A stretch of 63,671 nucleotides of DNA, counting the filler, from Olpidium bornovanus S191 (lineage: Eukaryota > Fungi > Olpidiomycota): NCBI GenBank assembly GCA_017911155.1. It is 28 parts of 28 records of this genome, joined end to end, with 100 filler letters (N's around TTAATTAATTAA, not from the genome) between each part and the next. Parts side by side here need not be neighbours in the genome. Positions count along the whole stretch, not along the records: positions 28,364 to 30,937 come from JAEFCI010002911.1; 27 more parts are not named here. The stretch is one strand, 5' to 3'. This document shows, in pieces, positions 28,264 to 30,937 of this stretch. The notes under the pieces are model-generated. The model was not told the origin of the DNA, ran no database searches, and worked only from the letters and a program-made list of their open reading frames with translations. Both the position numbers and the translations under genes were made by a program. Position 1 is the first letter of the stretch. Every line of letters starts with the position of its first letter.

Positions 28264-28423
28264 NNNNNNNNNNNNNNNNNNNNNNNNNNNNNNNNNNNNN
28301 NNNNNNNTTAATTAATTAANNNNNNNNNNNNNNNNNNNNNNNNNNNNNNNNNNNNNNNNNNNNCATGCCAGCTTTATGTCAGACGGCGATTCGCCGGTTG
28401 CGGAACCGAATCGAACGCCTTAC

Positions 28424-30937
28424 CGTGATAAAGAAATCCGGTAACCCGTCCATCTTGCGCACAAGGGCTGTGGAACTGTGCACCCAAATGGTGGACCCGT
28501 CCTTCTTGCGGTATTGCAGCTCGTTCGTGTGGCTCTCGATCTCGCCGGCGACGATGCGGTGCATCTGCTCCATTTCTGCCTCGAGAAACTCGGCCGAGCA
28601 CAGGTCGTGTATGGAGAGCTTCTTGAGCTCGCTTTCGGAGTAGCCGAGAATCTCTTGCATTCGCCGGTTGGCCTTGAGCCAATTGCCCGGAGGGGACACG
28701 TGCGCGATCCCGACGGCCGCTTGGTTGAACGTTACCGCGAGCTGCCGGCGCGACGCCTCGATCTGCTCCTGGTACCTCTTGCTTTCCGTGACATCGTTCA
28801 GCATTACGATCACTTCCGAGACTTCGCCATCGCTGTCCTTTACCGGCGAGAAGTGGCTCTGGATCCAGCGTTGGCGTCCCGTTGCAAACGGCGGGAAAAC
28901 GTCTATCTCGACCGGCGGTACTGACATCTTTTCACCGGCAAACGCACGGCGGACCTGGTCCGCAATGCCGAGCCCTTGCAGCCGCGGATCTTGGAGAATG
29001 TTGTAGCATCCGCAGGGAGGATCGTCGGCCAGGCCCCACAGGTGATGCCACGCGAGATTCACTCGGGTGATGTTGCCAGAAGGGTCGTATAGCTCCGTCG
29101 CGATCGGGCTCTGGTCCACAATGGTTTCGTATTTCTTTTTCAAGAGCTCCGCTTGTTTTGGTTCGTGGATGTCGGTGGCGGTGCCAATCCACTTCCGCAG
29201 GACCCCATCTGCGTCCCTCCACGGTACATACTTTCCGAGGAACCACCGGTATTCCCCAGTTCGCGATTTGAGCCTATAAGTCGCCGTCCAGGGGATGCAC
29301 TGCGCGGACGACTCGTACCACGTCTTCAACAAGATAGGGTGGTCGTCCGGATGGACGAAGTCCGAGAAATTTTGCTCTGATCGAGATGATCCCGTGTAAT
29401 CAACCCAAGTCTGGCTGCAGTTTCGCCCCAAGGCAACTCAGCAACCTGACAATCATAACACCGAATAAAAAACTCCGGATTGCGGGATTTACTTTAGGTA
29501 CACCTGTTTTCCGTCCGCGCGGGCCTGCCATACGATAATGGGAATGGACTCGGCGAGCTGTAGCACCTCGGCGGTCCGTTCAGTCACGCGCTTTTCCAGG
29601 TTTTCCTTGGACTTGAGGAGCTCCTCTTCGGCCTGCTTCAGCGCTGTGATGTCCTGCATGACGCCGATGATTTGGATAGGCTCGCCGTTCTCGCCGCGTT
29701 GGAAAACGCCCTCGCGAAAAAGGGCCCATCGTAACTCTCCGCCGGCATGCTTGATCTGTAACGTGAATTCAAGGAAACTGCCGTCCGCCATGGTTGAATA
29801 TTCCGCCTACGCGAGAGCGAAAAACAAAAAAAAAAAAAAAAAACCTGCCGTCGTTAGCGAACGGCGTTTAAAACGTTTTCGCCTCGTGTCCAAACACGAC
29901 CAACCGACCCGGTGGGAGTCTGGGTGTAGAAAACTGAGCGTGCTTTGGTCGAGATTTTTCGTCTGGCCCTCGGAGACTCCGAAGAATTCCATCGAGCTCC
30001 TGTTCATGTACTCACAACGCATGTACCGGAGGTCAAAGATGTATATGTTGTTTGGGACCAGAGTGGTGACGCTCTCGGCAAACTGACGGGCATTCTCGGC
30101 CTTGCGACGGGTCTCCTCCAGGACCGCCTCAATCCTTTTCCGATCCGAAATGTCGCGAATAATGTAAGCGAAGTACAGCGTGCCAGACTGCTCCCATGTG
30201 GTAATCGACATCTCTATGGGGAACTCCGTCCCGTCGACGCGGCAGCCGACAGATTCGATCGTGCGGCCAAACTCCGGCCCGGTGTCGTCGCGCGCGTGGG
30301 CGGCGAGGCGCTCCTCGTGGGCGGCTCGCAGGCGCTTGGGGAGAAGGTCGACAAATTGCAGGCGGAGCGCGCCTTCGGTGGAGCGCCCAAAAATCCGCTC
30401 CGCGCCGGCGTTCCAGGTGATGATCTGGCCGGACGTTTTCGTGGCCAACAAGGCGTCGTTTATGGACTGCAGGAGGGACTGGTATTTCCCTTCGGTGGCC
30501 TGCAGGGCCTCTTGGGCTTCCTCGCGGAGCATGTCGCGCATGACTACAACGGCGCCAAGTTTTCTTCCCTCCTTGCCGTACATGGCACGCCCAGAGCAAA
30601 GCAGCCTGGTCCTCCGTCCGTTGCGGGATTCAACGACGATCAGGTCATCCTTGACATGCTCACCGCGGAACGCGCGCAAGAGCGGGATATGATCTTCCGG
30701 GAGCGGTGTGACCCCGTCGGCGCAAAAGAGCCGATAATAACTCGGCCACTCCTTGCTTGTTAATGGCATCTCCCCGACTCCATGAAGCTGTGGGAGAGAA
30801 GATTCCATTTGATTTATTCCAGACCATACACGAGTCGCAAAGGACGTCTTCGTTACAAACGTCCACAGACCTCCCGTGCAGCGTCATTGAACAAGGTGAG
30901 AACACCCTCGCTGTTGCAGGCGACGACGCTTTCCATG
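28424..30937 (-). CDS. Multi-PAS sensor protein fragment (at least 6 PAS/PAC domains, about 750 aa), probably part of a hybrid histidine kinase; truncated at both ends. Exons 30871-30937, 29909-30787, 29493-29806, 28424-29414
   Basis: Repeated PAS-PAC signatures (WNAGAERIFG, VHPDD, GEYRWFL, RKKDGSTIWV, D[IV]T/S ends). Three GT-AG introns restore the reading frame. No kinase domain lies within the contig. Confidence 0.9.

Follow-up and report, generated by a model that had tools for sequence, protein, structure and literature searches.

Does a run of bacterial-style PAS domains interrupted by introns, lying in the genome assembly of the fungus Olpidium bornovanus S191 (GCA_017911155.1), represent an undescribed sensory system, a gene recently captured from a bacterium, or a member of a class of eukaryotic sensors that is already known? 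The window that was analysed is 63,671 nucleotides (nt) long and is made up of 28 parts of this genome joined end to end; the gene considered here occupies the minus strand of one of these, positions 28364-30937 (2574 nt, from JAEFCI010002911.1). This piece was the genome sequence studied, with profile and database searches run exon by exon or on parts of exons. Judged from its sequence, it comes from the interior of a nuclear, intron-bearing and apparently functional eukaryotic gene for a multi-PAS protein. We think it probable, though well short of certain, that the gene encodes a soluble sensor and that the fragment represents the sensing part of a histidine kinase (HK) resembling the fungal group V enzymes, the kinase itself probably being a hybrid one.

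Gene model and introns

Four exons and three introns make up the part of the gene in view, and the 750 codons of the exons contain neither a stop nor a frameshift, which agrees with the approximately 750 residues of PAS units claimed in the original prediction; every peptide quoted there, the linker EEELLKSKENLEKRVTERTAE included, is found in the translation. The features of the gene are as follows.

Exon 1, 30936-30871, minus strand: partial, 22 residues (MESVVACNSEGVLTLFNDAARE), N-terminal strands of PAS-1; cut by the edge of the piece
Intron 1, 30870-30788, minus strand: 83 nt, GTCTGT...CACAG, phase 0, GC 46%; shifts the reading frame
Exon 2, 30787-29909, minus strand: 293 residues; remainder of PAS-1, all of PAS-2, N-terminal half of PAS-3
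Intron 2, 29908-29807, minus strand: 102 nt, GTCGGT...CGTAG, phase 0, GC 45%; in frame, one stop codon
Exon 3, 29806-29493, minus strand: 104 residues plus 2 bases; C-terminal half of PAS-3, helical linker, first strands of PAS-4
Intron 3, 29492-29415, minus strand: 78 nt, GTAAAT...TGCAG, phase 2, GC 47%; in frame, three stop codons
Exon 4, 29414-28424, minus strand: 1 base plus 330 residues; remainder of PAS-4, PAS-5, PAS-6
Ambiguous tail, 28423-28364, minus strand: either a fourth intron begins here (GTAAGG) or 14 further codons (VRRSIRFRNRRIAV) lead to TGA at 28381-28379

Exon 1 aligns to the residues of the homologues P0220 and P0213 that immediately precede those paired with exon 2, and the gene extends upstream of it, past the edge of the piece.

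We regard the gene as eukaryotic because it bears introns, and the sequence evidence that the three intervals are introns of spliceosomal type is strong. Each begins with GT, ends with AG, interrupts a PAS unit and carries a T-rich tract towards its 3' end, intron 2 having a CTAAC motif and a run of 18 T ahead of its acceptor AG. Their composition (GC 46%, T 32%) differs from that of the exons (GC 58%, T 18%; z ~4), in which GC at third codon positions (GC3) reaches 74%. Uninterrupted bacterial homologues are collinear across all three junctions, with residue-exact agreement at introns 1 and 3, and profile scans of sub-pieces gave complementary half-domain matches on both sides of every intron. 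At intron 1, FNDAARE|LHG is continuous with FNETARNLHG of P0220 and FNRASREFHG of P0213, and over a longer span FNDAARE|LHGVGEMPL..W..Y.L..DGVTP runs parallel to FNETARNLHGLPFRAI..W..Y.L..DGVTP of P0220, and to P0213, without insertion or deletion of a residue. The junction at intron 2 (HPDSHR|AEY) parallels HPDDQDRAREY of P0226. Removal of intron 3 rebuilds the split codon AA|C, and across this junction QLAESIPIIVWQARADGKQVYL|N|QTWVDYTG (KQVYL|N|QTWVDYTG) can be aligned continuously with P0229 (QLAESLPQLVWVSRPDGYHEYFNKQWYDFTG / YHEYFNKQWYDFTG), where an Asn faces the one from the split codon. The GT-AG introns had been placed at 30788-30870, 29807-29908 and 29415-29492, coordinates that prove to be exact, and the motif VYL-N-QTW is indeed rebuilt across a phase-2 intron as had been proposed.

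The T18 run lies at 29826-29843 (A18 on the plus strand), shortly before the acceptor of intron 2, and is a plausible polypyrimidine tract. The length of an 18-base homopolymer is error-prone in sequencing; this one is intronic, so the frame is unaffected. Compared with its three best homologues (P0226, P0113 and P0189), PAS-3, the unit that intron 2 divides, lacks six residues in the helix and loop that follow HPD. Alternative splice sites for intron 2 were considered as the source of this shortfall and rejected: there is no in-frame GT nearby, the acceptor AG falls within an in-frame TAG, and the homologue alignment places the missing residues just inside exon 3 (29806-29740), not at the splice junction.

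Open reading frames of 148, 170, 182 and 272 codons lie opposite the gene on the plus strand, within 28478-30763. We discounted these and the other plus-strand and alternative-frame readings of 148-272 residues as by-products of GC3-rich coding, no Pfam family being matched by any. A scan against Rfam (for intronic snoRNAs, for example) found no RNA family in the piece.

PAS units and linkers

Six or more PAS units with coiled-coil linkers had been predicted, and six were found, with units recognised in every exon by Pfam and NCBIfam profiles and matches above the curated cut-offs in exons 2 and 4.

PAS-1, minus strand: exon 1 and exon 2 residues 1-~90
PAS-2, 30149-30487, minus strand: exon 2 residues 101-213; Pfam PAS, 1.3e-14
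PAS-3, minus strand: exon 2 residues 239-293 and exon 3 residues 1-50; PAS_3 profile positions 46-89 at exon 3 residues 6-50
Helical linker between PAS-3 and PAS-4, 29555-29644, minus strand: contains ...ENLEKRVTERTAEVLQL...; the 'coiled-coil' of the original prediction
PAS-4, minus strand: exon 3 residues 85-104 and exon 4 residues 1-~82 (to ~29168)
PAS-5, 28775-29119, minus strand: exon 4 residues 99-213
PAS-6, 28424-28738, minus strand: exon 4 residues 226-330

The match of exon 2 to Pfam PAS scored 54.6 bits (cut-off 22.6; 1.3e-14), and exon 4 matched PAS_3 at 102 bits (2.2e-29) and PAS_4 at 82.8 bits (2.6e-23). The NCBIfam profile TIGR00229 (sensory_box; cut-off 22.9) matched exon 2 at 74.9 bits (5.8e-21) and exon 4 at 125.9 bits in three stretches (9.5e-37). 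The six units are barely alike among themselves (28 bits for the best pair) and each can be matched to bacterial units at 38-46% identity (72-108 bits), which argues for an old and diversified array rather than one produced by recent internal duplication. The 'ERTAE' core of the linker is present in 13 of the 231 fetched proteins; in the examples it is followed, often directly, by an H-box or a further PAS unit, or else by a GGDEF domain.

The LOV motif GXNCRFLQ was also looked for, and no exon contains the string NCRF. PAS-5 carries a Cys-Gly-Cys at exon 4 residues 134-136 (29006-29014), within DDPPCGCYNILQDP, as a possible site for a metal or for redox chemistry.

Relatives of the array

Our statement on close relatives concerns exon 4. 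With this exon as the query, an exhaustive HMMER search of 1.84 billion representatives (E up to 0.001) gave 200,937 matches, and identities were 25-36% among the best 150, listed by summed score. The best collinear match in a local BLASTP comparison was P0194, with 37% identity over 293 residues, and no relative above 37% over exon 4 is found among the matches listed from the exhaustive scan. A word-index search, which is restricted to proteins between 0.55 and 1.75 times as long as the query and so leaves long kinases outside its range, returned PAS proteins of 229-569 residues at 19-45% local identity (the best with 31% over 66% of the query) and no match from the window's own genome. Among 185,579 prokaryotic species genomes, the 80 best loci were scattered over many bacterial phyla and two archaeal genomes at 21-41% identity, with no outstanding donor lineage. 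The metagenome contigs gave the same picture of distant relatives only (20-42% identity for the metagenome and prokaryotic scans together), and there was no exact or near match to exon 4 in either collection. Neither of the two long open-frame products is on record as an exact copy.

The relatives that carry organism names are all bacterial (Actinomycetota, Opitutaceae, Nodosilinea and other cyanobacteria, Pseudomonadota), and look-alikes in the ESM Atlas belong to generic PAS clusters whose recorded taxa are 100% Bacteria except for one archaeal cluster. No protein collinear with all six units was present among those fetched. In all eight of the best-matching proteins a HisKA or HisKA_3 domain with HATPase_c lies C-terminal to the array, and two of the eight also have REC. 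The suggestion that several units resemble the PAS subtypes of bacterial sensor kinases is borne out by these matches, and 'bacterial-style' is, at the level of sequence, a fair description of the array. The absence of eukaryotes from the matches is uninformative, because giant bacterial arrays gain from a ranking by summed score, and long eukaryotic proteins fall outside the length limits of the word search.

A FixL-like unit

PAS-2 differs from the other parts searched in its matches among solved structures. Using HMMER, these are confined to FixL, EcDOS/YddU and one entry named 'multi-sensor signal transduction histidine kinase', whereas exon 4 and the PAS-1 part gave none in the same type of search. 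Against FixL of Bradyrhizobium and Sinorhizobium (PDB 1DP6, 2CMN, 8JS5, 1D06) and EcDOS, E-values span 1.6e-12 to 5e-4; those for FixL run from 1.6e-12 to 2.4e-9, with the chains 8js5, 2cmn and 1dp6 at 1.6e-12 to 8e-12. One codon of this unit is of particular interest.

PAS-2 His codon, 30319-30317, minus strand: exon 2 residue 157, aligned with the proximal haem ligand of FixL, His200

Each of the four FixL alignments displayed pairs this His157 with the His of '..PDRSRHDSY..', and it is common to the four closest homologues (P0188, P0191, P0052 and P0140). We take the aligned Bradyrhizobium residue to be His200, a number counted from the known positions R206, H214, R220, L236 and I238. PAS-2 is like FixL in retaining the proximal His and the hydrophobic positions L236 and I238, and unlike it in that the R206/H214/R220 contacts are changed and the FG loop is shorter; an Arg stands two positions before the R220 equivalent. 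Among the homologues of PAS-2, residues 387-519 of P0191 retain the full FixL signature ('LMPEPDHSGH...IIGIGREVTGLRKDGSTFP'), which would make this protein a good outgroup for deciding whether PAS-2 derives from a true haem domain.

On the sequence, haem binding by PAS-2 is possible, if on balance rather doubtful, and where it occurs the unit would provide a gas or redox input. A larger proposal would have PAS-2 be a functional haem domain of the FixL class, in a eukaryotic multi-PAS protein that senses O2, NO or CO, possibly in a zoosporic fungus, derived by ancient transfer from bacteria and with no relative above ~45% per unit in the collections searched; we would give this combination little weight.

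Discussion

If the fragment is the sensing region of an HK of the eukaryotic multi-PAS (fungal group V-like) type, the protein would be a cytoplasmic multi-input sensor in which each PAS unit offers a separate site for a ligand, cofactor or partner. Shifts in conformation would be relayed by the coiled-coil 'S-helix' linkers (...RVTERTAE...) to a dimeric HisKA/HATPase core lying downstream, which would set the output of a phosphorelay. We infer the kinase label, as the piece carries no output domain, and the route from sensor to kinase is drawn from the architectures of the relatives and from the linker motif. The array would have spent long enough in a eukaryote to gain introns, to take on GC3-rich codons and to drift away from all the relatives sampled.

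Several points weigh against this interpretation. It had been noted that the kinase is not in the contig and, indeed, HisKA, HATPase_c and REC were not found in the 2574-nt piece with Pfam or NCBIfam. Bacterial multi-PAS arrays also feed GGDEF/EAL outputs. Ala, Glu and Ile stand in PAS-2 where FixL has R206, H214 and R220. Finally, the frame may end 14 codons past PAS-6, at the TGA at 28381-28379, which makes a kinase beyond the contig uncertain.

This last point deserves closer attention, since with a true stop there the protein could have no kinase at its C-terminus. The gene would then encode a multi-PAS protein that is PAS-only or has an N-terminal effector, which could be, for example, a protein-interaction scaffold or a regulator with a cyclase, Ser/Thr kinase or DNA-binding output. 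The 60 nt beyond 28423 are exon-like in composition (57% GC and 22% T, compared with 45-47% GC in the introns), but a composition test needs more sequence than this (z ~1.7). The read-through VRRSIRFRNRR retains register and shares, as V..I..R, three of ten residues with the VVEDIxxRK with which the homologues continue, yet the Val would be forced by any phase-0 GT, and the Asp of the D-I-T motif, kept in all five other units, would be Ser in the PAS-6 read-through. A fourth donor had been predicted at 28423, and the string GTAAGG is present, a good donor standing directly after the last strand of PAS-6 ('..DFFIT|'); its use is uncertain. Between an intron and a true stop at this position we find the balance roughly even. 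The array is followed by a kinase in all eight of the best-matching relatives. We consider a protein without a C-terminal kinase unlikely overall, although it is the alternative to be taken most seriously. Two further observations concern this tail: an ATAAA string begins two bases after the TGA, 15 nt from the contig end, and RRSIRFRNRR resembles a nuclear-localisation-like patch.

The origin of the array presents a different choice. Recent horizontal capture from a bacterium, which the domesticated, possibly bacterial sensor of the original prediction would imply, as opposed to vertical inheritance within a eukaryotic HK family, would fit with the exclusively bacterial identity of the named relatives, with the 38-46% identity of each unit to bacterial units and with the prokaryotic taxa of the Atlas clusters, but the lack of eukaryotic matches that lends these observations their force is, as discussed above, uninformative. 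No relative listed exceeds 37% over exon 4, the matches are spread over many phyla with no outstanding donor, and no protein fetched follows the whole array. The want of a close donor, the three introns and the host-like, GC3-rich codons all speak against a recent transfer, which is not supported and which we judge improbable; the array probably descends ultimately from S-box PAS arrays of bacterial type. A contig from a bacterial contaminant, or a pseudogene whose interruptions are insertions or assembly errors, might be suspected from the bacterial-looking domain content and from a contig of 2.6 kb with no flanking genes. Against this, all three interruptions have GT..AG ends, lengths of 78-102 nt and T-rich 3' tracts, their removal restores residue-exact collinearity with homologues and leaves 750 codons intact, and the prokaryotic and metagenome collections hold no exact or near match. 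Taking junction collinearity, composition, splicing signals and the exclusion of alternatives together, contamination or decay is very unlikely.

The sensing region of a eukaryotic multi-PAS HK is the reading that we carry forward, and it would place the fragment in a class that has been described. Group V HKs with PAS/PAC repeats are known from fungi, early-diverging lineages included, and multi-PAS HKs from the oomycete Albugo, the cryptophyte Guillardia and the haptophyte Emiliania (Kabbara et al. 2018, PMC6324907). As such HKs are already catalogued, the proposal that the locus represents an undescribed system fails. With these proteins, which we compared by description only, the fragment shares an intron-bearing gene, an N-terminal-type sensing region formed by a long array of repeated PAS/PAC units (six here), the lack of a transmembrane segment in the part seen and best sequence matches that are HKs, whilst itself showing no kinase or receiver domain. 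The original prediction also noted that early-diverging fungi possess kinases with ethylene-binding or CHASE inputs; ethylene-receptor and CHASE kinases are reported from these fungi (PMC5285503), but nothing in the piece relates to such inputs. Nor does anything in it speak for the proposed sensing by zoospores or of a host, or for a specifically fungal origin. The bacterial HKs annotated 'PAS domain S-box', such as WP_228052845.1 (P0226, Nodosilinea sp. LEGE 07298), MDP9486792.1 (P0194, from an Actinomycetota metagenome-assembled genome, MAG) and MGJ8650987.1 (P0157, from an Opitutaceae MAG), have the same subtypes of unit (PAS_3, PAS_4 and PAS/PAS_9) and the helical linker 'RV.ERTAE', their single units being 38-46% identical to those of the fragment and runs of three consecutive units up to 37%. 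Unlike the fragment with its three spliceosomal-type introns, however, these genes are uninterrupted, and none is collinear with the six units.

The fragment is therefore a real and fairly ordinary addition to the eukaryotic multi-PAS sensors, and 2.6 kb of sequence without an output domain raises no fresh question. It is chiefly useful as a clear case of PAS units of bacterial type with introns inside the domains. If the full gene proves to be that of a hybrid HK, it would bring a highly divergent sequence to the eukaryotic multi-PAS kinases, a group with hardly any identified input signals, and the FixL-like unit would offer one concrete and cheaply testable input in the form of haem-based gas or redox sensing.

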